DNA of 64,000 nt from Ruditapes philippinarum (taxonomy: Eukaryota): positions 1 to 64,000 of the forward strand of contig NW_026855520.1 in NCBI RefSeq assembly GCF_026571515.1, read 5' to 3'. Positions 8,466 through 36,847 of the stretch are shown here, in pieces; the first letter of the stretch is position 1, and each line of letters opens with the position of its first letter. The position numbers and the translations under genes are program-made. The notes beneath the pieces were generated by a model. The model was not told the DNA's origin. It worked only from the letters and a program-made list of their open reading frames with translations, and did not search any database.

Positions 8466-11014
8466 ATGATTCAAATAATGGAGAAATGTGGAATAATTCT
8501 ACTGTTGATGACTATGTCTGCCTTGCATCCAGCGACCTGTTACTTGCATAGTGACATGACTAGACTAATCGAGGATCTTTTCAACGACACAAGATACAGC
8601 AGACTTATCCGCCCAATTTACAACCAGGATAAAGTGATGGAGGTAATGGTTGACGTTCGTGATTTCGCATGATATGATTCACATGCCGTATGTTTTTGCT
8701 TTAACTTAAAGATCCGGCAACTCAATTTTGTATGGTTTGATATCATAAATATAATGCTCAAATGAAGATTTATCAAAATTGTAGGTTCCAAAAAGCATTA
8801 TTTGTCAAGATATTTCCGAATTTACATTTCATGTTAATAAAGAGAGGTAATTACAAAAATTTATTTTCTATAAAGTCTGAGGCAAATTTTTCAAAAAGAA
8901 ATGAATGCATATATCTTAATGATTACATATCATGTGGACACATAATTATTATTTGAAGTACATATTTTACTTATTCTTCGATATTTGAAAATTGTTTAAG
9001 AAGCATAATTATATACATATACTAAATTTCATTTAAGTGTGGCCGAGTGATTAAGGTCGCTGACTTGAGATCACAGGTCCCTCACCGCTGCAGGTTCGAT
9101 CCTCACCCGGGTCGAAATCTTTCATGTGAGGAAGCCATCAAGCTGGCTTAAGGAAGGTCGGTGGTTCTACCCAGGTGCCCGCTCGTGCCCGAAATAATGC
9201 CCGGAGGGGCACCTGGGGTCTTCCTCCACCAATAAAGCTGAAAAAAAATCGACGAAAAAATCTCGGCGGGACGCTCTAGGATGGCCCGACTTGAGTGTAC
9301 GGTCGCCCATATGTGCTTTCCGGCGGCGACCTTAAATAAACGCATTAAAAAAAATAACATGGTAAAACATTAATTACAACATACAAGATCTTTAAACTGC
9401 TTGAATTGATTGGTCTTTGCCACCATAGTCATTCCAGGCTGGTCAACTGTGCAATCTTACCAGGCATTATATTGTGTTGTTGTTTTCTTCTTTTTTTAAT
9501 TTTTCTCTTTTTTGTATTTTGATATTCAAATATTGTAAACTTTGAAGGACTGTCGGTTCAAAGCTCAAAGCCGACCAAGTACAATACGTGAATTGTGAAT
9601 ATTGAGGATAAATATTTAACAGTAAGGCAAACTTTACTCAAATTTCAAATAAACTTATTGCTAAATAAAGTTTATAATATATTTTTATGAATTATTTTGT
9701 GGATTATTTTAATCTAAATAAAGTCTTTTTTATACACAGGTCAACATTACTCCTGGAATTATGACTATTGAAAGTCTGGACTTAACAACGAGTGAACTTC
9801 TTACTATAATGTATATTCAGATATCATGGATCGACGAGTTTTTGATGTGGAATCCCTTTGACTATGGAGGTATCACAAAGTTACCCGTACCTTACGAAAA
9901 ACTTTGGATACCACCTTTATCACAGTCAAACGGAGCAATGAAAGAGAAGTCAGGCCAAATAATAAATCCTGGTTTTGCCCCAGTTTTCGTTTTACCTAAT
10001 GGATACGTGCTCCTCGTCACTACAGGATACTACGTAACTAACTGTGAAATAAACACTAGTTTGTATCCATTTGACTCGCATAAATGCACTTTTTATTTCT
10101 TTTCCGCGTTGAATGATGCCACAGAAATGGAGTTGAATTCTCTTACATCTGATTTTGCTCTCGGGTTACTTCAACAAAATGATGCATGGCGTCACACAAA
10201 GACTGATTTTAAAAAAGACACATTTTCAGCCGAGAATATTGCGTACAACATAGCCAGGCTTCAGTTTACGATAACACTAAAACGAAGACCTATATTTGAG
10301 ATCATAAATGTTTTTCTGCCGATTCTTCTGTTAACAGTTCTAAACCTTGCGGCTTATTTTGTTCCTGTCAATTCAGGCGAGAACGTTGCATACACTTTAG
10401 GCAGGCTTCAGTTTACGATAACACTAAAACGAAGACCTATATTTGAAATCATAAATGTTTTTCTACCCATTCTTCTGTTAACAGTTCTAAACCTTGCGGC
10501 TAATTTTGTTCCTGTCAATTCAGGCGAGCGTCTCTCATTTTCGATTACTTTATATCTTTCATTTGTATTCATAACGTCTGCAATGGTAAATGAAATGCCT
10601 CATGTCGCAAAGAATATAGCGTTTTCCTCTTACATCATGCTTTCTTTAAACGTCCTCAATACCGCAAGTGTACTTTGGAGTGTGTTTATGGTGCGGATGG
10701 CAACTTGGGCAAATCAAACGACACCGGTACCAATTTCTTTGCAGAAAGTGGTGAAGTTGGTCCACAAAATAGGTTCGACCACTTCTACGAAAGTCCATCC
10801 AAAAATAAACACAACCGATGACGATTCTGATGCAATCTCAACGGATAAAGGTCTTGAAAATTCTGATATTTATGATGAAGGAATAGTTGAAAAAGAATCA
10901 ATATTGTGGTCTGATGCAGTGAAAGTCTTTGACAAGATTTACTTTACGGTCACAACTGTTTTAGTCACATGCGTTATTTCAGTCATGATTTGTCTGTGGC
11001 ATCTTTCTGAATGA
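8466..11014 (+). CDS. Cys-loop ligand-gated ion channel subunit (nAChR-like, non-alpha), copy 1. Exons 8466-8642 and 9740-11014, ~483 aa including a 49-aa internal duplication
   Basis: Signal peptide, then RLIEDLF..YSRLIRP N-terminal helix. Phase-0 GT-AG intron (GAG|GTAATG ... ACACAG|GTC). W-x-D and WIPP motifs, Cys-loop CEINTSLYPFDSHKC (C-x13-C), LKRRP-M1, SGER-M2, M3, and M4 (FDKIYF). Confidence 0.93.
9037..9348 (+). mobile_element. tRNA-derived SINE with a V-domain-like body, in the intron of copy 1
   Basis: A box TGGCCGAGTG (9040), B box GGTTCGATCC (9093), body GGTCGGTGGTTCTACCCAGGTGCCC..CTTCCTCCACCAATAAAGCTG, A-rich tail. Confidence 0.85.
10232..10525 (+). repeat. In-frame 147-bp tandem duplication within the copy 1 CDS
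   Basis: Units 10232-10378 and 10379-10525 encode ENIAYNIARLQ...AAYFVPVNSG and ENVAYTLGRLQ...AANFVPVNSG. Confidence 0.95.
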
Positions 11015-14000
11015 AAAGCTGCTGTCCTTATGTTGATTAAATTTTCTATATGACTGACAAAATAAGTGTCATCATAAAAGTATGTAAGATTTTAAAATGC
11101 TGAAGCTGTTATCAAGTGATGTTATCAAAGACTGAAACTGAAAGTCACTTTATCTATTTTTATAATAACATGTATTTTTCTTAAATTTTCTTACGCAAGA
11201 CACTTTAAAACACAGTTATTCTCCCTCAGTTTCATTCATATTTCAAATGTGATAAAATCTTAAATCTTAAATTAGGAAAAACTCTCACTTGAGCCGTAAC
11301 ATGTATGTACTTAACCTTAAATTAGGAGTTTTTAAAGTTATGCTAGGATTTCTAGAAACAATATTTCCTAAATAAGATTATTTTCCAGAATAAACCATCT
11401 TTTTTGTTACTTCCACTATTGTAACCGTTTAATAACCGTTGAATAAAATATAAATTATCACAGAAAGTGTAACTCTATGTCATTCGAAATTGTGTTCATA
11501 AATCAGTGAGAATGATAAAGTTTGTAAAGGTATGGTCAGTCATTTTTCTAGTCCATTACAGTTCCATATCGAGCATAATTTAGTTATCAATTAAACCAAT
11601 GATTGGTGCCCTACATTATTTACCGATATTATAGCGAGTTCTTTGAATAAAAATATATTTTACCTTAGTGTTAACGTGACATTTATATTAGACAGCTCTG
11701 ATTGGTGCATTTTGCAGATGCGCGATGACGTAGAATCCTACCATTGCCGCTATATCAGAAGAACTGCGATGCCTGATCATACAACATAAATTATAACAAA
11801 AGTATAACTCTTTGTCATTTGATTGCTTTGTCAATAAATCAATGAGAATAATAAAGTCTGTAAAAAAAATGGTCAGTCATTTTTCTAGTCCACCACAGTT
11901 CCATATCGAGCATTGAGTTACCAACGTTTTCCTTGGTATCTATCTGAAAATCTTTACCATTATCATATCGCATCATCAAATACCCATGTTGTTTCCTGCC
12001 TCCTGTTCGAGGTTCTACTTCATAAAAAGTGTCTTCCTCTGTTTCAACTCCGAGATGAAACTGGTGTTTTGTAACATTTTATATCCGTTTGTTTGTCGCT
12101 AGAATTACTGGCATTTTTTGTCTCAGTTAACATGGTACTATTTAATGTTCATGAAATGCGACGGATCATAGGAGCCATTGATTCGAAACGCTCTTCCTAA
12201 CTTAATGCTCGACAATTTTTTTTGGGAGCCGTTATGTCTCTACGTTGAGTATGCTGAATTTCATTCTTATCTGTCTTTTAAGTAATCTTTTTTTCCCTCT
12301 AAATCGCTTTTGTTGCTCATTGATTGCTCCTGCATTTTCAGTTCTCTCCTTCATCTCTCCCCCCAGTAGTTTCAATTTGAGCACATACCGGTACTTCACG
12401 ATTTACTTCATGGTCACCATATGCGAGTGCGCATATACATGAACTACATTTCCATTAATTTGTGATCAGCTAGAAACATAAGATGTTTTGATTGAACTGT
12501 TATTACAAATAATAATATTATTTGATCATATTTATATGCGCAATACTATGAAATATTCATTCATTTCGAATAAACTGCCGTTTAGTCGGGTAACTTTGAA
12601 GAAAACCCAGCGGTCAGATCACTGTCGAGTTACACTTGCGGTGAGTTTTAGATTACACATCTTCTGATAACTTGAAATGATCGTAATGACAGCTTTATTT
12701 CCTTTAAGAGTAATCAATTCCCTACTATTTGGTACTAAGATATTGAAAATTGGTGAAAAAATGTTGAAGTTATGGAGTTCATATTAAGATGAGTGCTGAA
12801 AATTGAGCGGCGAGTTGCATACCTTTACTAAATATATATGTATCAATTTTTTATTTTTGGTAGGAAATGAAGTTTATTGAATTAAAAGCATAAACCAAAT
12901 ATTAAAACATATTTCAAATGAAAAATACTGTATTTTACATGGTTTTGAGAGGTATGAGGGCTGTAGAGTGGGTGTGGGGGTGAGGGGGGGGGGTGCGGGG
13001 GTAGTGACCAATCAACGCGCCGAACACCTATGGTAGGAAGGAATGAATGTCGGTTATATTATTAAAGCTTTTAAGAGTAACCGCGTTCAGTTCAAACATA
13101 GATGCATACAAACATACAAATGTAAATACTATTACGTCCAGCCGTTAATAAATTGGTTTTCGCAAATATTCAGGTTATTTATGTTGTATTTTGGCAACAG
13201 TTGTAAGAATCAAATAAGTAATGGTTAGTTTCTGTTCAAATCTGATTTACTATTTCACAATTTACATTTGCCTGTCATAAACTATGTTCATTAATATGCC
13301 ATGTAAAATTAGACACTTAGTTATTGTAGATAATATACCACAAAGTAATAAATATACTTTTATTTATCAGCAAGAAAAACTGGTAATAAGCACTGAAAGG
13401 AATCGTGTTTTTATGAGCAAATAATTGTATGTTAATCATAAGGAAAGTAGAAATGCTTGTCAAACACGCGTTCTCTTTTCCTCTGTTCTGAAAATGTAAC
13501 AATCATTACATTTAAACTCTCTTTATTTTCTTTGAGAAATATTGTCGTCATCTTACAATGTTAAGTATTTACTTCTGCTTATTCAATATATTTCATTTAT
13601 ATGTGAACTAATGGAAAATGATTGGACAAAGCCAAAAGTGGTGTGTAGAATAATTATTCTTGTCTCATTTGTTACATTGTTGGCTGAAGTAATTTATGTG
13701 TTAATCTTCTTTTATAAACTTCTATTTCAAAGATGTTGACAAATTACGAAAATGATAAAGATGTCTTAAAGGATTCCGCAATCTTCCACACAAGTAAGGT
13801 CTACCATACCTAATAGATGTGTGAATATGTATGTGATAGAACCTGAGCATTTCAACTGTCTTTTTTTGACAAATAAAATACATTGTGCAGCCATTGTAGT
13901 AGTTCTTGTATTCATCGGCCTTTAGGCTCGGATATGAAAAAGTATTTCTTTCCATTAACAAAATCAATTGCTTTGAAATATTATTCTTTTTATGGTTAAA

Positions 14001-14222
14001 TATTATCATAAAGATGGATGGTAAATGGACTTGGAAGACAAAGTTTTCTTAAGGACAGCCATCGGCATGCGAATAAATGATAATACACTTGATTTAATAT
14101 AGTATTGAAGATGAAACACAAAAGACCCATTATATTTATCAATATTTCTGAGACTACATTAAAATGATCTCAAAACAATATTGAAAAAGAACTGACCATT
14201 TGCGTATGCATCGTCATTGAAA

Positions 14223-15498
14223 ATGGAGAAATATCAAAGTTGAATAATTGATTTTTTTGTGTTCATGTCTGCCTTGCATACAGCGATCTGCTACTTGCAT
14301 AGTGAAATGACCAGACTTATTGAAGATCTTTTCAACAAAACAAGATATAGCTAGCAGACTTATTCACGCAATTTATAAGCAGGATAAAGTCATGGAGGTA
14401 ATTATTGATAATTTTGGTTAGACTAAGTCATGATTCAAATGCAGTTTGTTTTTGTATTACCCTTAACCAGCTTTAATCGATTGTGATTGGCTTTTGCCAC
14501 TAGTATTCAGTTATACTCAAACCGCCTGTACATCCATGAACTTGGTACCATTGTTCTATATTGTTGTTATCTCATGTTTAATAAGTTCGTCTGTTTCGAA
14601 AAAAAAGTCATACTTTTTTATTACAGAGGCATACACATGAAGTTGTTGTCGTCATGTGCAATGTAGCTTATCATTCAAATATTTTAAAAGTTATCGACAA
14701 CTATAGGATAACTTGCTAACCATGACAGTTGTGCAGTTGTTAGGGACACAATCTGAAAGCAATATTTTTTATGTCTTCCTTTCATTCGTAGAATATTTTT
14801 CAAAACAGATTATAATGGTTGTTGCCCTAAACAGACGAGCTTTAAAACCACATGCCGGGCTCTTTTTGTATGTATTTATTTATTTATTTAGTTGCAGTTA
14901 GTTTATTTTTTGTAATTAAATAATTTTCATTTACTCTTTTATATTTGGAAGCGACTGTCTGCTCAAAAATCAAAGCCGAACAAATACAATACCTTTTGAA
15001 AATTGAACATAGATAATTAACAATAAGGCAAATCCCATATCACACATAATAATTTTCTTGTAGAATAAAGNNNNNNNNNNNNNNNNNNNNNNNNNNNNNN
15101 NNNNNNNNNNNNNNNNNNNNNNNNNNNNNNNNNNNNNNNNNNNNNNNNNNNNNNNNNNNNNNNNNNNNNNNNNNNNNNNNNNNNNNNNNNNNNNNNNNNN
15201 NNNNNNNNNNNNNNNNNNNNNNNNTTTAAATTCCTTTAAAACACAGGTCAACATAACTCCTAAAATAATGACTATTGAAAGTCTGGACTTAACAAAGGGT
15301 GAACTACTTACCATCATGTATATTCAGCTGTCATGGATCGACGAGTTTCTGATGTGGAATCCCTTTGAGTATGTAGGTATCAACAAGGTTACCCGTACCT
15401 TACGAAAACTTTGGATACCACCATTATCACGACCAAACGTAGCAATGAAAGAGAAGTCAGGTCAAATAATAAATCCTGGTTTTGCCCAAGTTTTCGTT
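14223..15498 (+). pseudogene. nAChR-like copy 2, truncated pseudogene (exon 1 14223-14397; exon 2 from 15247, breaking off at ~15498)
   Basis: TGA at codon 7 (14241), a 4-bp insertion in exon 1 and a frameshift near 15383. The exon ends after INPGFA and joins sequence upstream of copy 3. Spans the N gap. Confidence 0.88.
15071..15223. other. Assembly gap (153 N)
   Basis: Run of N. Confidence 1.
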
Positions 15499-15939
15499 AT
15501 ACTTATTAAGTTATACACTTAAGATATACCATAACTTGTTGATGTGTGATAAAATCTTAGCATTTCATCTCTTCTTTTAGGCATTGCAGTGGCTCTTGTA
15601 ATTGATAGGATATCTTGTGCAGTGATGTGAAAAAAAGTACATTTTTTTTTCCACGAAAAAACTTAATTGCCTTAAAAATATTTGTTGCTCAATGGTTAAA
15701 TATTATTATAAAGATAGGTGGTAAATTGACTTGAAAGACAAAGTTTTCTTAAGGACAGCCATCGGCAAGCAAATTCATGATAATACTCTTTATTCCATAT
15801 AGTATTGAATGCGAAACACAAAAGATCCATTAGAATTATCAATATTGCTGAGACTATATTTAAATGATAGCAATTTACTGCCTCAAAACAATATTTAAAA
15901 ATTACTCACCATTTGCGTGTACATCGTAAATGATAGAAA

Positions 15940-18900
15940 ATGGAGACATATCAAAGTTGAATAGTTGCATTTTATATGTTCATGTCTGCCTTGCATCCAG
16001 CGATCTGCTACTTGCATAGAGACATGACTAGACTTATTGAAGATCTTTTCAACGACAAAAGATAAAGCAGAATTATCCGCCCAATTTATAACCAGGATAA
16101 AGTCATGGAGTTATCAGTTGATAATTTTGATTTTATACCTTCTTTTCACCAGGACAAAGTCAAGGAGGTCAAAGTTGATTAATATGGTTTGTCAGACTTC
16201 AAAAACCGTTTGTTTTTGCTTTACCCTTAATCTGATTGGAGCGATTTTGATTGGCATTTGCCATTAGTATTCAGCCACTCAAGCCGGCTGTGAATCGCCG
16301 AACTTGGTTCTATATTGTCATTATAATAATATGATTATATTAGTTTGTCTGTTTCGAGAAAAAAAGCCATACCTTAATGTTGTCAATAAATTTTGTTATC
16401 TAGGTGTAATGTTATCAAGTAATGGAAAATTTTATAATGCTCAAAAAACTTTATCTGGGCAAGCACTACGTGCCCTATTTACTCTTACTCATTATTTGAT
16501 GTTGTATCTTTAGCTGTCTCAGAAAAGTTGAAATTGTTTGATGCAATGATTTTGCCAATTTTAAACTATGGATGTGAAATATGGGGATTCCATAAAGCCC
16601 CTGATATTGAAAAAGTGTACATTTCTTAAACAGATATTGCATGTTAGACAGCAAACCACTAACATTACTGTATATGCTGAACTTGGTAAAGTACCATTAG
16701 ATATAATTAGGAAAGAACGTATTCTTAAATATTGGTGTAAAATTGTGAATTCTCCAAATACAATGGTGCACAAAAGTTTTATAGATAGTAAGCATAACAA
16801 TGTTAAGGATTCTTGGGCAGTATTTGTTAAATCATTACTAGAAAACTTAGGTTTTGCATATTTATGGAATTGTATTTCCATTTCTCAATATCAATTGAAT
16901 GCTGTGATCGAAAGATTGTATAGTCAATATTATCAAGATTTATACTCAATGATTGATACAATGCCAAAACTGAGTACCTATAAAATTATAAAAGATTGCA
17001 TTGGATTTGAAAAATATTTGACGTGTGTCAAAACTGATGTTTATCGTATTGCATTAACTAGATTAAGATGTTCATCCCATAGACTTGCAATTGAAGAAGG
17101 TCGTTTCAGAAATGTTGTAAGAGAAGATAGAAAATGTATATATTGTAAAATGAATGCTATTGAAAATGAATATCATTTTGTTCTTGTGTGCCTGCATTAT
17201 CGAGATATAAGAAATGCATGTCTCCCTAAATATTATTGCCATTGGCCAACGTCTCAGAAATTTAAAACTTTGTTAACTACACAACAGTCGAATGTTTTAA
17301 ATAAGTTAGCAAAATTTATATATTTAGCAAATATAAAACGCACTGCATTTACTGATTAGATTTATATTAGTTCAAATATAATACTGTATTACTTTTTATG
17401 CATGTAAAGCACATAATTTTGTTTGTGTGGCCTGGTAACATGTACCGATCTTGTATTATACATGTTTATACTTATACGACCCAGTTATCGGAATATTTTA
17501 TCGGACAATGTAGTAGTCACTTGCAAATAAATTTATGTGCTATCGAATTGAAATGTATAAATATGAGTGTTTCCTTATACATATATATTATAATTGACAT
17601 TTATCATCATTCTTTGTATATAACATACTCTTCTCATGATATTTGTTGCCGCCTAATATATTCATTTAGGCAAAAAACTGTATATAATGTTTATATGCCT
17701 AATAAAATATTGAATTGAATTGAATTATATGATCACTGCGGCATATAGTTGTTGTCGTCGTGCAAAAACTTTAATGTTCAATGTAGCTCATCATTCAAAT
17801 GTTTCAAAAGTTATAAACATCTTGGATAACATGCTAATCATGAAAAATGTGCAGTTGTTAGACAAGGGACATAATCAAAAAGCTTCATTTTTAGATATCA
17901 TCCTTTCAATCTCAGAATATATGTTAAAATTGATTATTATAGTCGTTGCCCTAAACAAACTAGAGTCAACACCACATGCCGTGCTCTTTTTTGTATTAAT
18001 TGATTGATTGATTTATTTATTTTAAATTATTTCATTTATTTTTTATTCTTGGTATTCACATCCTTTATTCTTTTATTTTTGTAAGTAACTATGTGCTCAA
18101 AAATCAAAGCCGGACAAGAACAATATGTGAATTTTGAAAATCAAGGATTGATAATTAAAAATAAGGCAAATCCCATATCACACATTAATAAACTTTTTGT
18201 TAAATTTTGATTAAAGATAATATCTACATGTATGGCTTTATTATTTAAATCTGAATAAATTCCTTTTATACACAGGTCAACATTACTCCTGGAATTATGA
18301 TTATTGAAAGTCTGGATTTAACAAAGGGTGAACTACTTACCGTCATGTATATTCAGCTGTCCTGAGAGTTTCTGATGTGGGATCCCTTTGAGTATGGAGG
18401 TATCACAAAGTTACCCGTACCTTACGAAAAACTTTGGATACCACCTTTATCACAATCAAACGGAGCAATGAAAGAGAATTCAGGCCAAATAATAAATCCT
18501 GGTTTAGCACCAGTTTTTGTTCTACCTAATGGAATGGTGTTCTTTGTCACTACAGAATACTACGTAACTAAATGTGAAATAGACTCTAGTTTGTATCCAT
18601 TTAACTTGCATAAATGCACTTTATATTTCTTTTCCGCATTTAATGATGTCACAGAAATGGAGTTGAATTCACATAAATCTGATTTTGCCTTAGAGTAACT
18701 TCAACAAAATGATGATTGGCTTCACACAAAGACTGATTTTAAAATAGACACATATTCAGCCGATAACACTAATAACACTAAAACGAAGACATATTTTTGA
18801 AATCATAAATGTTTTTCTGCCGATTCTTCTGTTAACAGTTCTAAACCTTGCAGCTTACATTGTTCCTGTCAATTCAGGAGAGCGTCTCTCATTTTCTATC

Positions 18901-19352
18901 ACTTTATATCTTTCATTTGTATTCATAACTTTGGCGTCGCAAAGAATATAGCGTTTTCCTCCTATATTATGCTTTCTTTAAACGTCCTCAATACATCAAG
19001 TGTACTTTGGAGTGTGTTTATGGTGCGGATGGCAACTTGGGCAAAGTAAACAACACTGGTACCATTTTCCTAGCAGAAAGTGGTAAGGTTTTTTCAAAAT
19101 ATAGGTTCGACCACTACTACAAAAGTCCATCGAAATTTGAACACAACAGATGACGATTCCGATGTAATCTCAATTGATAAAGGTCTTGAAAATTCTGACA
19201 TTCATGAAAATGAAATACCGATAGTTGAAAAAGAATCAATATTGTGGTCTGATGCAGTGAAAGTCTTTGACAAGATTTACTTTACGGTCACAACTGTTTT
19301 AGTCACATTCGTTATTTCAGTCATGATTTGTCTGTGGCATCTTTCTGAATGA
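15940..19352 (+). pseudogene. nAChR-like copy 3, near full-length pseudogene (exon 1 15940-16110; exon 2 18276-19352)
   Basis: TGA at codon 7 (15958), splice donor mutated to TT (16111), LINE in the intron. Deletions near 18365, 18763 and 18932, and stops at 18696 and ~19047. Confidence 0.92.
16373..17727 (+). mobile_element. 5'-truncated non-LTR retrotransposon (LINE; RTE-X-like, clade tentative) in the copy 3 intron
   Basis: RT C-terminal FCYLGVMLSSNG. ORF 16568-17359 has RLRCSSHRLAIEEGR..CIYC..ENEYHFVLVC zinc motif. AATAAA plus a (TTGAA)3 tail. Absent from the matching intron site of copy 4 (~24130). Confidence 0.9.
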
Positions 19353-21720
19353 AATAGTGGTGTCCTTTTGTTGATTAAATTTTATATATGACTGACAAAA
19401 TAAGTTAAATATTCATCATGATAGTAAGTAAGATCTTAAAATACTGACGCTGTTATCAAGTGATATTATCAAAGACTGACACTGAAAGTCACTTTATCTA
19501 TTTTTATAATAACATGTATTTTTTTTAAATTTATTTCGCAAGACACTTTAAAACACACTGTTATTCTCCCTCACTTTCATTCATATTACAAATTTAATAA
19601 AATCCTAAAGTAGGATAATCTCTCACTTGAGCCGTAACATATTATTTAAAGTTTTTAAAGTTATGCTAGGATTTCTAGAAACATAACTTCTTAAATGAGA
19701 TTATTTTCCAGAATAAACCATTTATTTCTTTTATTTCCACTTCGGTAACCGTTTAAAAGCTTGGGTTATAATATTGGGCTATTTGTTGCTTGCAATGGCA
19801 CAAAAATTCTCAATCAAATTATCAAGAACATAAACTAAACATAAATGAACACAAAATAAAAAAAATAGAATTTCAAGAATAAAGATATTTGCACAAACTT
19901 CAACAAAAATACAGTCCGATTGGAAGCATTTTGCAGGTGAGCGATGAAGTAGTTTCTTACCATTGCAACTATATCAGCGCTGTTTTGCTTACAACTACGA
20001 TGCTTGAACTTAATGAATAAAATATAAATTATCACAAGGAAACGTATCTCTATGTTATTCGAATTCCGTGTTCATAAATCAGTGAGAATGATAAAGTTTG
20101 TAAAGATATCGTCAGTCATTTTTCTGTTCCATTACAGTTCCATATCGAGCAAAATTTAGTTATCAATGTGTTCCTTGGAATGAGCAACTCTTTTACAATT
20201 AACGTGGAGCACATCATCAAACTATGCTACTTCATCAAAGTGTATTCCTCTATGTTTCAACTCCCAGATGAAAATGATCCGTTTGTAATAGTTTATATTG
20301 TGATTGTGGCATTTTCTTCATAATAAACATGCTAGTAATAAATAACATACAATTCGACAGCTCATATTTTGCGTCTTATATGATCCGCTAATCCGAAGCT
20401 CTCTCCTTAACTTCATGTTCAACACATATTTTGTAAGCCGTTTAATCATCACCATATATTTCCCAATAGAATTTCAATCATTTCAGTCTGGCTTGTAGGG
20501 TTTTTTTTCCGTCAGAAATGAGATTATTGAGCATTGACTTCGCCTGCATTTTCAGTTAGGTTTCTTTTAACTCCTTCCCCAGTTTTAATGTGAGAAGACG
20601 CTATTCGATTTACTTCGTGGTCACCATATACGAGTAGGCATACACTACATTTCAATTAATCTGTGATCAGGAAGAACAATAATCACTTAAAGTACATAAA
20701 GACTCAGACATTTGGGGGGAACCCCCTGTAAACCAATTTTGCTCAGTTTCTTCTATTTCAGGCTTTATAAATTGATAAACACTTCTACATCTTCGTTGTT
20801 GATACTTTTGTCATCAGTCTATTTCATATAGGTATGTATGAAAGCCGATTATATTTTCGAAGCCTTTTAAATGTAGCCCCGTTTCGTTTAAACATTGATA
20901 AATACACACAAACATACAAATGTACATACCTTACATCCAGCGGTAATTTAATTGGTTTTGACATATCTCTCGGCTATTTATGTCATATTTAGGCCACAAT
21001 TGTAAGAATCGAGCATTACCTGTCCTATAATTTGTTCATTTAATTGCAATGTAAAATCAGATACTTAGTCTGTAGATGATAAACTTTAAAATGATAATTG
21101 TACTTTTATTCATCAGCAAGTAAAACTAGTAATCACCACTCAAATATTTGAAAATAATCGTATTTTCATGAGCAAATAATTGTATGATTGTTAAGCATTA
21201 AGAAAACAGAATTGATTGTCAAACATGCAATCTCTTTTCTGATGTTCTGAAAATGTAATAATTCAATTACATTTAAACTCTTTTTCTTCTAGGAACAATT
21301 ATATCGTCATCTTAGTTACAATATAAAGCATTGTTTTTTTTATTCAATATGTTTCATTCATAAAAATATGTGTACAAGTGAAAAACGATTGGACAAAGCC
21401 AAAAGTGATATTTAGAATAATTATTCCTGTCTCATTTGTTGGCTGAAGTAATTATGTTGGAATCTTCTTCAATAAACTTTTATTTCAAAGATGTTGACAA
21501 ATTTAGAAAATGATATAGATGTCTTTGACGATTCAACAACCTTCCAAACAATTAAGATTGTGAACTTGTGGATGTGTGAATCTGTATGTGATAAAATCTG
21601 AGCATTTCGTCTCTCCTTTTAAGCCATTGCAGTGGTTCTTGTAATTAATAGGATATTCTTGTGCAGGGATGTGAAAAAGTACATTATTTCCATGAAAAAA
21701 CTTAATTGCTCTTAAAATAT

Positions 21721-23440
21721 ATAGTTTAAACAATATTTTATTAATGAGCATTACATTTACATGATAACTGACAAATAATAAATAGTACGGATTGAGTAGG
21801 AAGCTTGAAAAGCTTTTTTTAGAAACTCTTTCCGTAATCACTATCACAAAGAGTATGTAAAATGGTAACAATTATATGCATTTTTGTGTTAAATATACAT
21901 AATATTTTCACTATAAACTTGCTTCTTTACATGTACAAGAAAGTTAGCAATTTGCACTCTGTATTTCCTACTCGAAACGACATTAATTATAAAAAATAGA
22001 CATAAAAATGTGAAGAAAAACCCTATAGCTCTATAGCATGAATACACGTAAGTGATCAATGCACAAATTAGCACGTTTAAACTTATCAAGGATAATAATA
22101 GAACTTTTAAACATATTTAAAAAAGATAAATAAAAATAAAGATATGGAAACGTAAGTTAATTGTTGAAATATTTGGGTAATAGAAGGTAAATAATAATGT
22201 GGAAACGTAAGTTAATTGTTGAAATTGTTGGGTAATAGAAGGTAAATAATAATGTGGAAACGTAAGTTTATTGTTGAAATAGGTAGGAAATAAGAGACAG
22301 ATTTGAGAGAAAGAAAAAGAAAGACAACAAGAAATGGTCACTATAATACTATGGAGTTGATGGAACGAGTTTATAATATACTTTTGAGAAGATATTATGT
22401 ATCTAAATCTCTATTTCATATAAGTCGAAATAATACCTTTCTATTACATTTCAAAACGTTTTGTTTTGTGTAAATATGAGTGTATATGAAGGACTATTGT
22501 TTCATTTAAATCGTCAGCAATTGAATTATCACCATAGAGTAAAACGTTAAGTGTGACCGTTGTTATTTCACTAAAATTGTTAAGGAGAACATTTCGTTCA
22601 TCTTGGTACCTTGGACACGAGAAGAAATAATGAGATGTGTTTTCTAGGTCGCCACATTCACAAAGTGGACTTTCTATTATGTTTTTGAAAACAAAATTTA
22701 ATGTTCTTTGAGAGAACTACAATGTGTTCTTAGTCTTGTGTGTATAATCTGGTATTTTCTCTCACCTACATAATAATGAGAAGGCACACTTTGGACATCT
22801 TCATTAAGTCATGAAAATTGAAATGGATGGTGAATTTCTGTAATTAACGGGAATATTGTTTCAGTCTTAAATTGATGATGGCAAAAATGAATGAGATTAA
22901 GGTTGTGTGTGACAAAATATATTTCTAGTGTGGTCTGCATTTCGTAAATTATAATCTGAAGATTCTCCTACTGTATCGGGAAGTAATGAAGAGAGGAAAT
23001 AAGAAGAAAGATTATTGAACATTTTATAAAGAAGAATTTGTTTGTGTTTGTACATAGCACCTTACTTTATGGGGTTGGATGCAAGTATCTTCATAAAGAT
23101 TAGAGATAGTTTTGTTGTACCGGTTATTATTCTGCAGGCTTCAAGTTGAATTTTTTCAAGTTCAAATTCATCTTGTTGAGTAATGTTGTCTCAAACATCA
23201 TCCGAGTATTCCAGAAGGGGCCGAATGAAAGAGAGATATATAGTTTCTAGTGACTAACGATCAAAAATGAATTTCAAAGATCTCATAATATAAATTCTTT
23301 GCCAAGTTTTTTGGTAATATTTTGTATGCGGGAATGCCAATTTCCATCATTAGAAAATGTTACTCCAAGATGTTTGTGTGAGGTCACTTCATTTATTTTC
23401 ACTCCGTTCATTGTCAAACACTCTGTACATTGTCAAAATG
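21721..23440 (-). mobile_element. 5'-truncated, decayed CR1-type LINE upstream of copy 4, with 7-bp TSD AAAATAT
   Basis: Minus-strand translation gives NEVTSHKHLGVTFSNDGNWH (~23335-23395), SFIRPLLEYSD, HTRLRTHCSSL and SPLCECGDLENTSHYFFSCPRY (~22605-22672). AATAAA at the 3' end (~21737-21742). TSD at 21714-21720 and 23441-23447. Empty site upstream of copy 3. Confidence 0.88.
22146..22281. repeat. 55-bp tandem repeat, ~2.5 units, in the CR1 3' UTR
   Basis: GGAAACGTAAGTT recurs at 22146, 22201 and 22256. Confidence 0.9.
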
Positions 23441-23705
23441 AAAATATTTGGTTCTCTATGGCTAAATATTATCATAAAGATAGATGGTAAATTGACTTGA
23501 AATACAAAGTTTTCTTAAGGACAGCCATCGGCAAGCAAATTAATGATTCTAATCTTGATTCCATATAGTATTGAATTTTAAACACAAAAGATCCATTAGA
23601 ATTATCAATATTGCTGAGACTATATTTAAATGATAGCAATTTACTGCCTCTAAACAATATTTAAAAATTACTCACCATTTGCGTGTACATCGTAAATGAT
23701 AGAAA

Positions 23706-25170
23706 ATGGAGACATATCAAAGTTGAATAGTTGCATTTTATATGTTCATGTCTGCCTTGCATCCAGCGATCTGCTACTTGCATAGAGACATGACTAGACT
23801 TATTGAAGATCTTTTCAACGACAAAAGATACAGCAGAATTATCCACCCAAATTATAACCAGGATAAAGTCATGGAGGTATCAGTTGATAATTTTGATTTT
23901 ATACCTTATTTTAACCAGGACAAAGTCAAGGAGGTCAAAGTTGATTAATATGGTTTGTCATACTTCAAAAACCGTTTGTTTTTGCTTTACCCTTAATCTG
24001 ATTGGAGCGATTAGGATTGGCTTTTGTCATTAGTATTCATTCACTCAAGCCGACTGTGCATCCTCGAACTTGGTTCTATATTGTCACTATATTATGTTAG
24101 TTTGTCTGTTTCGAGAAAAAAGTCATACTTTTATGATCATTGCGGCATATAGTTGTTGTCGTCGTGCAATAACTTTAATGTTCAAAGTAGCTCATCATTC
24201 AAATGTTTCAAAAGTTATCAATATCTTGGATAACATACATGTGCAGTTGTTAAACAAGGGACATAATCAAATAGCTACATATTTTAGATATCATCCTTTC
24301 AATCTTAGAATATATGTTAAAACCAATTATTATAGTCGTTGTCCTAAACAAACTAGAGTCAACACCTCATGCCGTGCTCTTTTTGTATTTATTTATTTAT
24401 TTTAAATTATTTCATTTATTTTTTATTCTTGGTATTCAAATCCTTTATTCCTTCATTTTTCTAAGTAAATATCTGCTCAATAATCAAAGCCAGACAAAAG
24501 CAATATGTTAATTATGAAAATCAAGTATTGATAATTAATAATTAGGCAAATCCCTTATCACACATTAATTAACTTATTGTAGAATAAAGTTAAATTTTGA
24601 TAAAAGATAATATCTACATGAATGGCTTAATTATTTAAACCTGAATAAATTCCTTTTATACACAGGTCAACATTACTCCTGGAATTATGACTATTGAAAG
24701 TCTCGATTAAACAAAGGGTTAACTACTTACCATCATGTATATTCAGCTGTCCTGGATCGACGAGTTTCTGATTTTTGCCTTCGGGGTACTTCAAAATGAT
24801 GCTTGGCGTCACACAAAGACTGATTTTAAAAAAGTCACATATTCAGCCGAGAACATTGCATACACTGTAGGCAGTCTCAGGTTTACAATAACACTAAAAC
24901 GAAGACCTATTTTGAAATCATAAATGTTTTTTCCGCCGATTCTTCTGTTAACAGTTCTAACCTTGCGGCTAACATTTTTCCTGTCAATTCAGGAGAGCGT
25001 CTCTCATCTTCGATCACTTTATATCTTTCATATGTAATCATAACGTTTGCGTCGCAAAGAATATAGCGTTTTCCTCCTACATTATACTTTCTTTAAACGT
25101 CCTCAATACAGCAAGCGTACTCTGGCGTGTGTTTATGGTGCGGATGACAAATTTGGCAAATAAAATCACA
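23706..25170 (+). pseudogene. nAChR-like copy 4, pseudogene (exon 1 23706-23876; exon 2 24666 to ~25170)
   Basis: TGA at codon 7 (23724). A ~306-bp deletion at 24770 removes the Cys-loop. Frameshifts in M1, and truncation after M3. Confidence 0.92.
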
Positions 25171-27595
25171 AAGCAGTAGGGGACACGTCCCTCCTCTGGT
25201 ACCCTCTTGATGCATCTATTTGTCAGGGGATGGCGCCGAAAAAGTGATCATTTTTAATGTAAATCTCAGTAAAAGTAATACCAATGTATCCCTAATAGAT
25301 GGGGTCTAAATTGGGCATTTTTTCTCACTATTTGCATTGAGGCCTCAAAAAGGGGGAGGGGAATCAAATAAAAGAAAGAGACAAACAATTGCGAAATCCA
25401 AAACATTGAGTAAATTTTCAAGTACGCAGGTGAGTACGTGACGCAGGTGAGTACGTGACGTAAGTATAATAAATGAATAAGGATGCCAGATTAGCAAACA
25501 AAATCTGTAGGTTAATAAATATTTAGTGATAGAGTAACATGTTTCATATATGAACAGAAAGCAAATGCTAATTGAGAAATAAACGCATAGTGAATCATAT
25601 TTCATATTGGCAAATACTGTATGTGTACTGTATGGTTGACTCTTTAAATGGATAGATTAAAATACAAACAAAAAACAACAGATGTGATGGACTATTCAGG
25701 ACATACAATGCATTTATATAAAGTAACAAATCATAAAAAGAGTAACCGATACTGCGATGATATCATTTACACTGTTTAAGTGTTTATATCATTCAGTTAA
25801 TACGAATTTATATACATGTATGTTCGATTGCGTTGGAAGCTACGAGCTTATTTAAGCACACTAGAATCCGTTCCTGGAACCAACCAATATGGTTAGCTTT
25901 ATTGTCTGGTTTTACACTGAAAACGGGATAGATTTTATATGGGTGTCCAAATTAAGGGAGCATTTAAGATTAAAAAACTATCCCGTTTTCAGGTCTAAAC
26001 CAGGCAGTACAACGTTTTCTAAGATTGTGGTCTAAACTAGGCAGTAAAAGTTGTATCATTATTTTAAACCAATTATCGGTGCCCTACATTATTTTTTGAT
26101 ATTATTACGAGTTCTTAGGAGAAAAACATCTTTTACCTTGGTGTCAACGGGACATTTATAACAGACAGCCCGTTTGGGTGCATTGGATGCCTGATCCTTC
26201 AATATAAATTATTACTTCATGGCCACCATATACGAGTGCGCATATACATGTACTACATTTTCATTATTTGTGATCAGCAAGAAACAATAATCGTTTAAGG
26301 TACATAAAGACGAAAACTTCGTGCAACCCGATTTTGTTTAGTTTCTTCTGTTTAAGGCTTTATAAATTTAGTAACACTCCTAAATCTTATTTGTCGTGAT
26401 TTTGTCAGTCTAAAATACTTATGATAACTGTGTTACAAAATAAACTTATTTCATGCAGGAAAGAATGAATGTCAGTTATATTTTTGAGGGCTTTTAAGAG
26501 TAACCGCGTTCATTTAAAACAGATGCATACAAACATACATATGTACATAATATTACGTCCAGCCGTTAATAAATTGATTTTCACAAATATCCCGGCTTGT
26601 TTTTGTCATGTTACAGTTGTAAGAATTAAATAAGTAATGGTTAGTTTGTGTTCAAATCTGGTTTACTATTTCACAATTTACATTGCCTGTCATAAACTAT
26701 ATTCATTCTTTTGCCATGTAAAATAAGACATTTAGTCATAGAAGATGATAAACCACAAAGAAATAAATGTACTTTTATTCATCAACAAGTAAAACTGGTA
26801 ATAAGGAATCGTATTTTTATGAGCAAATAATTGTATGTTAAACATTTGGAAAGTAGAAGTGCTTGTCAAACATGAGTTCACTTTTCCGCTGTTCTAAAAT
26901 TGTCAAATTCATAACATTTAAACTCTATTTTCTATGAGAAATAATGTCGTCATCTTACAATGTAAAGTATTTGCCATTTTATTTAATATGTGTACTAAGT
27001 GAAAAATGATTGGACAAAACCAAAAGTGAAATTTAGAATGAATATTCCTGTCTCATTTTTTACATTATTAACTGAAGTAATTTATGTTCGAATCTTTTAT
27101 AAACTTTTATTTCAAAGATGTTGACAATTTTAGAAAAATGATAAAGGTGTCTTTGACGATTCCACAACCTTCCGAACAATTAAAATTTACTAGTAGATGT
27201 TTGAATCTGTATCTGTCTTTTTTAGACAAGTAAAATTTATCGTGCTGCCATTTTAGTAGTTCTTGTATGCCTCGGATTTTCTTGTGCAGCGATGTGAAAA
27301 GTACATTCTTTCCATTGAAAAAAATGCTTTTAGACATTATTTTTCTCTATGGTTAAATATTATCATAAAGTTGGATAGTTAATGGACTGGAAAGACAAAG
27401 TTTTCTTTAGGACAGCCATCGGCATGCGAATTAATGATAATACACTTGATTTCATAAAGTATTGAATATGAAACACAAAAGACTCATTAGATTTATCAAT
27501 ATTGCTGACAGTACTTTAAAACGATGGTGATCTACTGTCTCTAAACAATATCCAAAAGCAACTCGCCATTTGCGTGTGCATCTTGGGTGTTGAAA

Positions 27596-29635
27596 ATGGA
27601 GAGATATCAAAGTGGAATATTTGTATTTTTCATGTTCATGTCTGCTTTGCATCCAGCGACCTGCTACTTGCATAGTGATATGACTAGACTAATCGAGGAT
27701 CTTTTTAACGAAACAAGATACAGCAGACTTATCCGCCCAATCTATAACCAGGATAAAGTTATGGAGGTAATAGTTGATTATTATGGTTTATCCTTATTGT
27801 TTTTTTTCCATTTTTTTAACCTGCTTAAAGCTATTGTGATTGGCCTCTGCCATCAGTATTCAGCCATTCAAGCCGCCTGTGCATCGTCTTTTTTGGTACT
27901 ATATATTGTGGTTATCTCAGGTTTCATTTGTTCGCCTGTTTCGAAGAAAAAGTCACATTTACAGATCACTGCGGCATATAGTTGTTGTCGTTGTGTAAAA
28001 ACTTTAATGTACAACGAAGCTCAACATTCAAATATATCTTAAAGTTATCAATCAACAACTTGGATAACTTGCTAATCATGACAGTTGTGCAGATGTTAGA
28101 CAAGGTACATAATCTGATAGCTATATTTTTTTAGATGTCTTCATTTCCACCTTAGAATACATTTCAAAACTGATTATTATAGTTGTTGCCCTAAACAGAC
28201 GAGCGTTAACACCTTATGCCGTGCTATTGTTTTGTATTAATCTATTTAAAATTATTTCATTTATTTATTTATTTTGGTATTCAAATCTTTTATTCTTTTA
28301 TTTTTTTAAGTAACCGTCTGCTCAAAAATAAGTCGGACAAAAACAATGCGCTTATTCAGAAAATCTAGGATTGATAATTAACTATAAGGCAAATCCCATA
28401 TTACACATAAATAATTTTTGAGAATAAAGTTTAATTACAATAATAGATAAAATATTTACATGAATCGCTTTATTATTTAAATCTAAAGAAATTCCTTTTA
28501 TACACAGGTCAACATCACTCCTGGAATTATGACTATTGAAAGCCTGGACTTAACAAAGGGTGAACTACTTACCATCATGTATATTCAGCTTTCATGGATC
28601 GACGAGTTTTTGATGTGGAATCCCTTTGAGTATGGAGGTATCACAAAGTTATCCGTACCTTACGAAAAACTTTGGATACCACCTTTATCACAATCAAACG
28701 GAGCAATGAAAGAGAAGTCAGGCCAAATAATAAATCCTGGTTTTGCCCCAGTTTTCGTTTTACCTAATGGAATGGTTCTCCTTGTCACTACAGGATACTA
28801 CGTAACTAAATGTGATATTGACACTAGCTTGTATCCATTTGACTCGCATACATGCACTTTTTATTTCTTTTCCGCGTTGAATGATGTCACAGAAATGGAG
28901 TTGAATTCTCACACATCTGATTTTGCCTTCGGGTTACTTCAACAAAATGATGCATGGCGTCACACAAAGACTGATTTTAAGAAAGGCACATATTCAGCCG
29001 AGAACATTGTGTACACCTTAGGCAGTCTTGAGTTTATAATAACACTAAAACGAAGACCCATATTTGAAATCATAAATGTTTTTCTGCCGATTCTTCTGTT
29101 AACAGTTCTAAACCTTGCGGCTAATTTTGTTCCTGTCAATTCTGGCGAGCGTCTCTCATTTTCGATCACTTTATATCTTTCATTTGTATTCATAACGTCT
29201 GCAATGGTAGATGAAATGCCTCATGTCGCAAATAATATAGCGTTTTCCTCCTACATAATGCTATCTTTAAACGTCCTCAATACAGCAAGTGTACTCTGGA
29301 GTGTGTTTATGGTGCGAATGGCAACCTGGGAAAATAAAATGACACCGGTACCAATTTCATTGCAGAAAGTGGTGAGGTTTTGCCAAAATATAGGTTCGAC
29401 CACTACTACAAAAGTCCATCCAAAAATAAACACAACCGATGACGATTCCGATGCAATCTCAACGGCTAAAGGTCTTGAAAATTCTGACATTTATGATGAA
29501 GGAATAGTTGAAAAAGAATCAATATTGTGGTCTGATGCAGTGAAACTATTTGACAAGATTTACTTTACGGCCACGACTATTTTAGTCACGTGCGTTATTT
29601 CAGTTATGGTTTGTCTGTGGCACCTTTCTGAATGA
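27596..29635 (+). CDS. Cys-loop ligand-gated ion channel subunit (nAChR-like, non-alpha), copy 5, intact. Exons 27596-27766 and 28508-29635, 432 aa
   Basis: Signal peptide, phase-0 GT-AG intron, Cys-loop CDIDTSLYPFDSHTC, four TM helices and an SGER ring before M2. No stops or frameshifts. Confidence 0.95.
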
Positions 29636-31394
29636 AATGGTGGTGTCTGTTTGTTCATGACTAGCAAAATTAATTTCATAATTTTCTTAATTCATCATGA
29701 TGGTAAGAAACATTCGAAAAAAATTGCAGTTATAATCAAGAAATGACTTTAAAGTAAGATCTTGTATTAAGGTAAGGCGAATGGAACCGACTGCTATGTT
29801 ACAGAAAATATAATTTATCAAAACAGATTATAGTTCAACCGAGCAAATGTAATTATTTTCAAGGAGCTCAACTGACTTAAAAATGACGAGGAAAGCCATA
29901 CTATTTCAAATGACATTAATCAAGTATAAATAAAAATGTTAAAATATAAAAAAATAACAAGAAATTTGCTAGGACTTAAATTGAATCTTGAATTTTGAGC
30001 GATTCTTAGCTCGACATTTGCAAAATAAAAATGATTCCTGTGGTAAGAATGGTCGAAAATATAGTTTCAGTTCCTTTATTAAAAACAAACCTCAGTGGTG
30101 TCGCTTTTAAGTAAAGTATAATATTATGAAAATAAATACAGAAAGCCTAAAATATGCGTTTATATACTCTTTGTTGAAAGAAAAAGATTAATATTTAAAA
30201 TAAAGTGTATATTAGCAGAAGCATAGAGGATATATAGTGCTGCAAATCAGCCCATTTTACTAGCCTATTTAAAGGGGTAACTGGTCTATGTCAGCCAACA
30301 GCAAGTTTCATATACCAAAATGTTCGTCTGGATCTTGTAGTTTCTGGAATGGATATTCATTTGCCCAACCCGATGCGAAGCTAAGATATCCAAGATGGCG
30401 TCAAAGATGGCCGCCAAATCCCTAAATTTTCTAGTATTATTTACGTTGACTTATTTCTTTTTCAGTTTTGTAAATCAATTGAAAGATTTTCATAAATTTC
30501 TTATTTTTCAGCTTACTTATGCTATAAATTTTGACTTTTATTGATTTTTTTCTAGTTTTTTTCATCGCCTTATTTAAACGAAAGAAGAAAAAAATATGTT
30601 GCAAACTGGGTGTCCTTTTTTGAATATGTGTAACTTATTAGTTATTCTTGTTTAAACTGAATAACATTCATGATTTCGTTTAATACAGCTTTAAATCTAT
30701 ATCTACACATATTTAGAATAAGTTAGAATAAGCGGACTATGCCATAAATGTTTTTTATTTATCTAAATTTATATACAAAGTGGGTGGGGTATTACGAACG
30801 GGAAGTCAACTTTAAATTAAATACTTTTTGTTTTATAATAATAGTAATATAAAAAGGTTAACAATTTTATTTAATTGGTTAGTGATGAGAGACATCTTAT
30901 CTTTCATAGAAAATGCCCTGCATGTGTGTCTAAATGTTGAAATATCTCTTTTATTTGTTTTATGCACACAATAAGGAACTATTTACTGACCTGTATTTGC
31001 TTGCCTTTTGTTAAGGATTTGTTTGCAAGCTTTTTTTTTTCTCCTTAGCCATAAACATTCATTGTTAGTCTTCAAAATGTGATTTTGATTATACTTGTAG
31101 GGTCACTGTTCAAGACCCATAAGCTAAGCATTTATTAGGCAATAATAATAATAATCTATTTATTAACTTACAGAATTTCTCAGACAACATTTATCTCCAC
31201 AACCATCATTAATGTAGGTTACTTCCTCTTACATGTTTTTATTTCAAAGAGTTATACTAATTTATGAATAAGAGAATTTCTTTATAATGCAGGCTGTTGA
31301 TTTTAAATATTCGAGCGTGCTGTCTGACATGCAGCTCTTGTTTTAAGGCATTGGCATAACATATGATAATCTACAATTGAACCATATTTGGAGT

Positions 31395-35400: not shown

Positions 35401-36847
35401 TATGCATGTTTCATGCAAACCGAAGGTCAACAGAGTAATAAGATCTATTGTAGATAAAATATCCAACTTTTAAATGACTATTTTGTCAATTTAAGAAATT
35501 TAAAAAAGAATTACATTTCATTTGACATAAAAAGGTGTGTAACATATAAATAAATTAAGCAGAGATTGTTTTGCATACATTGTAACTTTTCAAAATCCTT
35601 AGGTGAACTTTACTAACAAAATCATGTTATTAAATTGGTAACTCACTTTTGAACAGATTTTTTAGATCTGACAGGATATACTGTAATAGTATCACACTTT
35701 GAAAATCACCATATGTTTATTAACTTACGTAAATATTGGCCATTCCTATATATCAGTATAATCGAGAGGGTCAGAGTTTCTTTAGATTTTTTATTCATAG
35801 TGGGTGGGGTACGATTTGAACAATAATTCATTAAATAACTAGAAGCAAATTATCATATTTCCTGGTGTATTATGTTAATTACTTACATGGACTGCACTAA
35901 AGAAGCTATAATTTGACAGAAACACAAAATTTCGGGAAATAATTGATAGAAAAATAAGTACCAGTTACAACCTTACATTGGAAAACTATTTTAATGTACC
36001 GCCCTCCATTTTATATGTCTCTACTGCATAATTACAAAGAAAGATTTCTTAAGATATGATATGAATGCATTAAAGCATTACTCTCATGAGTACATTACAA
36101 TGGTGTGGAAATAACACAAATAATGTAATAAAATATTTCTCTGTTAAAGCTAGACAAGAGTATCATAGCAAAACCCATATGTTTACGCATTATTTTGCTT
36201 AATTACGTATAAAAAAAGCAAAAAGCAATCTGTTTCTCCAATAAAATAAATCTCTTCGTATAAAACGCTTTAAATGATATCTTCCGTGCAAAATTTTTAC
36301 TTGAAATACAAAAGCGGGAAAACAAAATATGAGCACATACTAATATTCTAGAATATTTAGGGATTTGGCGGCCATCTTTGACGACGCCATCTTGGATTTT
36401 TAAGCTACGCATCGGATTTGAACCAAATGAATATTCATTCCTGAAACTACAGATCAAGACGAACAATTTGGTATATAAAACTTGCTGTTGGCTGACATAG
36501 ACCACTTCGGTGTCATTTTACCCTATGAATTTGCAGCACTGATAATTACTACAGCTTAAATGTGAATACCTACAAAAGCCTAGTATTTGTTATCCATATC
36601 TCTTACAGATTAAGACTGAATAATGTAAAATTAACTATTATCAGATTATTGAATTTGTTCCGTAATTTTTGTCTTTTTTCACTATTCTTTTATCTATCAC
36701 GTTTATTGTCCTATTTTAGATGATATCGAAAAATGTTATATAATCGCGAGTGTCTTGTTTTAGCTTACAAACAAATGTCAAAGCGAATGTAAAACAGTGT
36801 TGCCTGAGAGCATTTCATCAAGGTTACTTGTTTTTCATCTTGTCTCT

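Follow-up and report, generated by a model that had tools for sequence, protein, structure and literature searches.

Bivalves have hundreds of nicotinic-like channels that have no acetylcholine (ACh) site, and an array of such genes is present in the Manila clam, Ruditapes philippinarum. The array occupies positions 8466-29635 of the stretch of DNA that was analysed (contig NW_026855520.1, positions 1 to 64,000; 64,000 nt, hereafter the window), where five nicotinic-receptor-like Cys-loop channel paralogues follow one another in tandem on one strand. As the best explanation, we regard the array as quite probably a birth-and-death tandem cluster of a young, heterodont-clam-specific subfamily within the published expansion of intron-poor nicotinic-like genes in bivalves, with an intact protein that is a cation-channel subunit. 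On this explanation, a two-exon unit would have been duplicated in tandem, with the outcome that copy 5 stayed intact, copy 1 kept an open frame carrying, in the present assembly, a 49-aa duplication of beta10-M1, and three copies decayed, two of them as recent duplicates of a copy that was dead already. The copy 5 protein would be a subunit of a predicted pentameric cation channel whose own interfaces could not bind ACh in the canonical way, and it would be either gated by a ligand of its own or a non-binding partner of other paralogues.

The copies were counted by tblastn of the long open reading frame (ORF) and the short ORF upstream of it against the window, which gave matches between 8.4 and 29.7 kb, and blastn with the copy 5 unit returned the same five. 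In the two-exon unit, the signal peptide and the alpha1 helix come from exon 1, and all the rest of the protein from exon 2. The single intron is common to the five copies, is in phase 0 and lies just before strand beta1 (...DKVME/VNITPG... in copy 5, the slash marking the junction), and the exon junctions are homologous in all five (ATGGAG/GTAAT ... ACACAG/GTCAAC). The RefSeq protein XP_060588119.1 ('acetylcholine receptor subunit alpha-like') corresponds to copy 1, and its exons are joined at the homologous point. A preliminary description of this DNA had proposed five same-strand paralogues with one phase-0 intron, amplified in tandem; both searches and the homologous junctions agree with the former, and the duplicated two-exon unit seen in the array agrees with the latter.

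Copy 5, with 57 + 375 = 432 aa, is the sole fully intact member. The frame of copy 1 is open despite an in-frame 147-nt (49-aa) repeat of loop C/beta10-M1, and this duplication of beta10-M1 should disturb the membrane topology. The preliminary description had spoken of intact proteins in the plural, which holds for copy 5 but not for the others, copy 1 being open but duplicated and copies 2-4 being dead. Because the two duplication units of copy 1 differ by 8%, the repeat is not a trivial assembly stutter. It is absent from a paralogue on contig C6085 and from P0003, a protein of metagenome origin that shares 96.5% identity with copy 1, and therefore it may be polymorphic or specific to the present assembly. 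The C6085 paralogue (C6085:173828-175899, locus L001) is an intact two-exon gene collinear with the copy 1 region, with 89-93% nucleotide identity over several kb and a protein about 90% identical; if not a haplotig of very high divergence, it is a segmental duplicate. Copies 2, 3 and 4 have in common a TGA at codon 7 and bear additional stops, frameshifts, deletions or truncation, which makes them pseudogenes or fragments. Since exon 1 of copy 3 and that of copy 4 are 98.2% identical, a dead copy was itself duplicated.

To characterise the protein, the exon 2 product or XP_060588119.1 was used for homology searches and folding, and the joined 432-aa coding sequence for codon counting. The exon 2 product matches the Pfam family PF02931 (Neur_chan_LBD) with an E value of 4.3e-25. 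An AlphaFold2 model built with 83 relatives (mean predicted local distance difference test score, pLDDT, 88.9) contains the beta-sandwich, M1-M3, a short post-M3 helix and MA-M4, with transmembrane helices predicted at residues 177-200, 207-229, 239-265 and 334-367 of the exon 2 product; the top Foldseek matches of the model are chains of nicotinic ACh receptors (nAChRs) and of the 5-hydroxytryptamine (5-HT) receptor 5-HT3A, with TM-scores of 0.74-0.81. The Cys-loop, C-x13-C, reads CDIDTSLYPFDSHTC, and both of its cysteines are invariant in the 83 relatives. The motif SGER stands before M2, and the pre-M2/M2 segment SGERLSFSITLYLSFVFITSAMVDEMP aligns residue for residue with SGERVSFKITLLLGYSVFLIIVSDTLP of mouse 5-HT3A. 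The pore residues are Glu at -1', Arg at 0', Ser at 2', Thr at 6', Leu at 9', Phe at 13' and Asp at 20', with no Pro at -2'. Glu at -1', no Pro at -2' and an acidic ring at 20' form the pattern of cation selectivity, and by these established rules the pore would be of the cation-selective type of the nAChR/5-HT3 branch.

The ligand-binding residues were checked in alignments to mouse 5-HT3A and to a limpet alpha-like subunit bearing the Cys-Cys pair. The position of the loop-B Trp is taken by Ala (FFSALND), that of the loop-A Tyr by Ser (WIPPLSQSN) and that of the loop-D Trp by Tyr. Loop C, YSAENIVYTLGS, is short and has no vicinal Cys-Cys; it retains two Tyr, which we take to be spaced as in alpha7. 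The alignments show that the residues binding the quaternary ammonium of ACh are lost on both subunit faces, and by its sequence the protein would not be classed as an alpha-type ACh-binding subunit. The open copies 1 and 5 agree in this loss as well as in the Cys-loop, the four transmembrane helices and the cation-type pore. All residue assignments of the preliminary description (C-x13-C, SGER, loops A, B and D, no Cys-Cys) proved correct in these alignments, and its more general view of a cation-type Cys-loop channel without the canonical ACh aromatic cage is upheld by the Pfam match, the pore alignment and the AlphaFold2 model. A prediction of a two-copy complex of the copy 1 extracellular domain (P0002 residues 22-238), made without controls, gave a score of 0.00 and counts neither way.

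Such genes are numerous in bivalves. Jiao et al. (2019, BMC Genomics 20:937, PMC6896357) reported 99-217 nAChR genes in each of five bivalves, most of them intronless or with 1-2 introns and 55-65% of them in tandem arrays; the ligand-binding domains are diverse, the principal ACh-binding residues are kept in few genes, many intron-poor genes are silent (up to 31% with no or low expression), and some genes show gill expression or a response to stress and infection. The pattern which these authors described is that of intron-poor, tandem genes and retroposition (PMC6896357). In the genomes of R. philippinarum and M. mercenaria alike, Neur_chan_LBD belongs to the expanded families listed in a clam genome paper (PMC11592408). 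A 2026 preprint sorted 3,586 molluscan nAChR-superfamily sequences into 15 clades, some with substituted binding residues; its clade resembling the cephalopod chemotactile receptors (CRs) includes bivalves, and divergent clades were proposed as possible ionotropic chemosensors (PMC13174522).

Our searches placed the array within such a background. Searching the Ruditapes genome with the exon 2 protein gave at least 113 matches, and a model of the ligand-binding domain (LBD) found 727 candidate matches in the same genome, of which 150 were scored; these genomic relatives stand in tandem clusters spread over many contigs, and nearly all of them are full-length in one open frame. With the family profile, an exhaustive HMMER search gave 439 clusters (50% identity) under an E value of 1e-30, and the named clusters sampled were all bivalve (Mactra, Pinctada, Sinanodonta and Ruditapes); a family-profile search of a word-indexed protein collection gave 16 matches, with no cephalopod sequence among them. 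Among the 122 nearest single-domain relatives, the loop-C Cys-Cys is present in 3, the loop-B Trp in 52, the loop-D Trp in 7 and the loop-A Tyr in 2. With at least 150 scored LBD matches in the genome and most of the nearest relatives also lacking the cage, the array does not represent an unusual orphan family, as had been thought. Four bivalve database proteins of 800-1200 aa (P0013, P0016, P0018 and P0037) each contain 2-5 separate stretches matching the family profile, and are probably adjacent tandem genes fused by automatic annotation.

The same two-exon structure was found in the nearest paralogue clusters (C402, C5552, C15684, C15361, C2094 and C5222; 30-40% identity); in each, an exon 1 can be recognised upstream, and a polypyrimidine-AG acceptor stands where the homologous codon lies. 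In paralogues less closely related, a single ORF encodes the entire protein together with its signal peptide. As the same intron is present in neighbouring clades, it was inherited from the wider clade, so that retroposition, suggested in the preliminary description as the possible origin of the array, did not seed it: it was the two-exon unit that was duplicated. Retroposition, if it happened, would lie much deeper than the array.

A quick maximum-likelihood tree of 88 sequences was built without an outgroup, and for both reasons its deep branches are unreliable. The window protein falls in a clade with P0003, P0004, a Mercenaria protein, three further sequences and a Mactra protein (Shimodaira-Hasegawa-like approximate likelihood ratio test, SH-aLRT, 98); the relatives in Mercenaria (62% identity) and Mactra are intact. 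The limitation of this clade to Ruditapes, Mercenaria, Mactra and the further sequences fits the lineage-specific family that had been proposed. The alpha-like sequences with Cys-Cys form a separate well-supported clade, together with intronless clam paralogues.

Selection was estimated from the open copies by the Nei-Gojobori method. The ratio of nonsynonymous to synonymous substitutions (dN/dS) is 0.26-0.27, at a dS of about 0.18, for copy 5 against copy 1 or the C6085 paralogue, and 0.39 for copy 1 against C6085. By region, the corresponding ratio of uncorrected proportions (pN/pS) is 0.05-0.11 in M1-M3, 0.27-0.50 in the extracellular domain, 0.5-0.7 in the intracellular loop and, from small counts, about 0.5 and not above 1 in loop C/beta10. 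The channel core (M1-M3) is under strong constraint, and loop C is relaxed without an excess of replacements. Purifying selection of this strength (omega about 0.26 overall and about 0.05 in M1-M3) argues for a working channel subunit.

Several observations weigh against an intact, functioning cation-channel subunit. The match to PF02932 (Neur_chan_memb) has an E value of 9e-5 and scores 23.3 bits, under the gathering cut-off of 28.1 bits. Position 13' of the pore is Phe where Val is usual, and because of this replacement the conduction properties are uncertain. When three RNA libraries and one contig set, from runs that carry no tissue information, were aligned to 27000-30600, reads over exon 2 were found in one of the three libraries, patchily and at a depth of up to about 9, and at most sites their fixed differences fit copy 1, not copy 5. 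The copy 5 splice joint was not seen at the reporting threshold in the three libraries over this stretch, and a protein search in which the RefSeq protein of copy 1 was found did not find one for copy 5. The only strong signal in the aligned stretch, at 30146-30508, comes from a dispersed repeat some 275 bp long. Transcription of the family is weakly indicated.

To see to which receptors of solved structure the family is closest, PDB chains were ranked by bit score, the 88-sequence tree having been built without CRT1/CRB1, 5-HT3A and vertebrate nAChRs. With a single sequence as query, 5-HT3A scored 107 bits, octopus CRT1 92, alpha7 84 and Alpo4 about 83. With the family profile, the muscle beta chain scored 131 bits, 5-HT3A 122, DES-2 117, delta 114, alpha7 105 and CRT1 99, so that CRT1 ranks under the beta, delta, gamma and alpha7 chains of nAChRs and under 5-HT3A. 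The 150th bivalve cluster reached 142 bits with the same profile; as the solved chains score lower than this, all solved receptors, the CRs included, are remoter than many bivalve genes. The best matches of the sister two-exon clade are nAChR beta, alpha6 and alpha3 chains, and that of the intronless clade is alpha7 (144 bits). The likeness to cephalopod CRs that had been pointed out earlier is not accompanied by any specific sequence affinity, CRT1 with its 99 bits standing under nAChR and 5-HT3A chains. An identity as a 5-HT3 receptor, the best single-sequence match in PDB, was considered and rejected: the margin is small, the profile favours the nAChR beta chain, and the clam protein lacks the Trp that 5-HT3A has in loops B and D.

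Among named systems, the bivalve genes of Jiao et al. (PMC6896357) resemble the array in their bivalve host, one intron, tandem arrangement and nearest relatives among bivalve paralogues, as well as in lineage-specific duplication, pseudogene by-products, divergent ligand-binding residues and the low expression of many members; unlike that set, Ruditapes and the venerid/mactrid subfamily stand outside the study, and the clam intron is common to a wider clade. The cephalopod receptors CRT1 and CRB1 (PDB 8EIS and 8EIZ) are likewise nAChR-derived, intron-poor, clustered and without the ACh cage, with a cationic pore motif, but they belong to another taxon and have no special sequence relationship to the clam family. 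The CRs are characterised by expression in sensory epithelium and by gating through poorly soluble environmental ligands. Alpo4 of Alvinella pompejana (PDB 8BX5; PMC10338036), an orphan receptor unresponsive to ACh or 5-HT, is also an nAChR-like subunit from a lophotrochozoan and likewise lacks the Cys pair of loop C; it retains the aromatic cage including the loop-B Trp, whereas Ala stands at this position in the clam protein. The best solved sequence relatives, 5-HT3A and muscle nAChR beta1 (107-131 bits), are about 20% identical; orthology is not implied. With 5-HT3A the clam protein has the SGER pre-M2 motif and a closely alike M2 pattern in common, but 5-HT3A retains the loop-B and loop-D Trp; like beta1, the clam protein is without the agonist-binding cage.

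What role, then, might the intact protein have? It could be a structural, non-binding subunit that co-assembles with alpha-like paralogues in ACh-gated heteromers, like vertebrate muscle beta1, which we think unlikely but worth serious consideration. The cage residues missing on both faces, the short loop C without Cys-Cys as in non-alpha subunits, the top rank of a muscle-type beta chain among solved relatives of the family profile (131 bits), the beta, alpha6 and alpha3 matches of the sister two-exon clade and a channel core far more constrained than the LBD would all suit such a subunit. The lead of the beta chain over 5-HT3A (122 bits) is marginal, however, and because of this small margin the match does not amount to a grouping; moreover, the cage is lost in most of the more than 100 nearest relatives, and therefore suitable alpha partners would be a small minority. 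The chemosensory role, in which the family would be functionally analogous to the cephalopod CRs and would receive non-ACh external ligands as chemosensory or environmental (possibly immune) receptors, appears improbable to us. Like the CRs, the family is poor in introns, clustered in tandem, devoid of the ACh cage and equipped with a cation-type pore; it is also maintained by purifying selection, and divergent molluscan nAChR clades, with bivalves in the CR-like one, have been seen as possible chemosensors (PMC13174522), as has been discussed in a similar light for the orphan annelid receptor Alpo4 (PMC10338036). However, these features are widespread in the bivalve expansion and therefore do not single out the array, there is no specific affinity to CRT1 or CRB1 (99 bits for CRT1 against 142 for the 150th bivalve cluster), expression is barely detectable in the RNA libraries, pN/pS in loop C is about 0.5 and not above 1, and most copies are dead.

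A slightly fainter chance falls to the array being a functionless remnant, the whole cluster heading for loss with copies 1 and 5 as the last to decay. Three of the five copies are pseudogenes, copy 1 carries in the present assembly a duplication that would break its topology, the RNA signal is very low, and the published proportion of intron-poor bivalve nAChR genes with no or low expression, up to 31% (PMC6896357), speaks in the same sense. Against it stand the omega of 0.26 overall and 0.05-0.11 over M1-M3 between open copies at a dS of about 0.18, the intact relatives in Mercenaria (62% identity) and Mactra, and the existence of a duplication-free form of copy 1 (P0003, 96.5%) and of the intact C6085 paralogue. 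We would give similarly little credence to the more specific proposal that the proteins of the intact gene and of its orthologues in venerids and mactrids assemble into cation channels, homomeric or mixed with paralogues, that are gated by a non-cholinergic external or metabolic ligand and expressed peripherally, for example in siphon, mantle edge or gill; if true, it would make them an independent bivalve counterpart of the cephalopod chemotactile receptors. We return to the birth-and-death cluster of a clam subfamily, in which the array is an ordinary, partly decayed example of a gene expansion already known from bivalves; a sensory role is unsupported. As the chemosensory idea had already been published, its proposal for this locus was reasonable but not new. 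The array alone leaves existing knowledge unchanged, both the genomic pattern and the chemosensory hypothesis being already in the literature (PMC6896357, PMC13174522). It is a clean, datable example, with one intact gene, one with an M1 duplication, three dead copies and orthologues in other clams, and efforts to de-orphanise such channels could use it as a modest test case.

The coordinates of the features of the array are given in Table 1.

Table 1. Exons, introns, duplication, gap and insertion of the five-copy array (positions in the window)
Feature	Position	Strand	Remarks
Copy 1 exon 1	8478-8642	+	signal peptide, alpha1 helix; alternative in-frame ATG at 8466; matches N-terminus of XP_060588119.1
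Copy 1 exon 2	9740-11014	+	open frame with internal duplication; Pfam PF02931, E 4.9e-26
147-nt tandem duplication in copy 1	10225-10528	+	Tandem Repeats Finder (TRF), 2.1 copies, 92% alike; loop C/beta10 and M1
Copy 2 exon 1	14223-14397	+	pseudogene; TGA at codon 7, 4-nt insertion
Assembly gap in copy 2 intron	15071-15224		22 nt before acceptor; flanks collinear with copy 5
Copy 2 exon 2 fragment	15247-15505	+	first 259 nt only, two 1-nt indels; copy 3 upstream region directly after
Copy 3 exon 1	15940-16110	+	pseudogene; TGA at codon 7, TAA at codon 42, donor GT>TT
Non-LTR (long terminal repeat) retrotransposon tail in copy 3 intron	16364-17730	+	5'-truncated; ORF 16568-17359
Copy 3 exon 2	18276-19352	+	pseudogene; three stops, -29 and -16 nt frameshifts
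Copy 4 exon 1	23706-23876	+	pseudogene; TGA at codon 7; 98.2% identical to copy 3 exon 1
Copy 4 exon 2 remnant	24666-25170	+	~300-nt deletion, several frameshifts, 3' truncated
Copy 5 exon 1	27596-27766	+	57 codons: signal peptide, alpha1 helix
Copy 5 intron	27767-28507	+	GT..AG, phase 0
Copy 5 exon 2	28508-29635	+	375 codons and stop: beta1-beta10, Cys-loop, M1-M4

By blastn, both flanks of the assembly gap are collinear with copy 5 and keep its orientation, position 15070 corresponding to 28429 and 15228 to 28489, and about 59 nt of the copy 2 intron are unaccounted for at the gap. Exon 1 and the exon 2 fragment assigned to copy 2, which may belong to one physical copy, stand on its opposite sides; because the gap is inside the intron of this pseudogene, no reading frame spans it. 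A minus-strand ORF of 115 aa at 14970-15317 was rejected as an artefact that reads the Ns of the gap as X, and is not a gene.

The intron of copy 3 carries a 1.4-kb insertion, which is the tail of an abundant non-LTR retrotransposon (long interspersed nuclear element, LINE) for which the genome yields over 13,000 first-look candidates, with open frames of up to 1141 aa. Its best genomic copy is 99% identical and lies inside a 1141-aa open frame on C10434, which suggests that the element was recently active.

Other repeats were observed around the copies. A 55-bp tandem repeat of 2.7 copies (window 22134-22282) lies in an insertion upstream of copy 4. Positions 400-1196 of the window contain a satellite-like tandem repeat of 165-bp units (331-bp higher order; 4.7 copies, 85% match), and the end of C6085 bears the same repeat (93.6% over 1.6 kb). 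The dispersed repeat of about 275 bp mentioned above resembles a short interspersed nuclear element (SINE) and lies at 30234-30508, with a reverse partial copy near 36290-36507 and at least 579 candidates in the genome at 94-97% identity.

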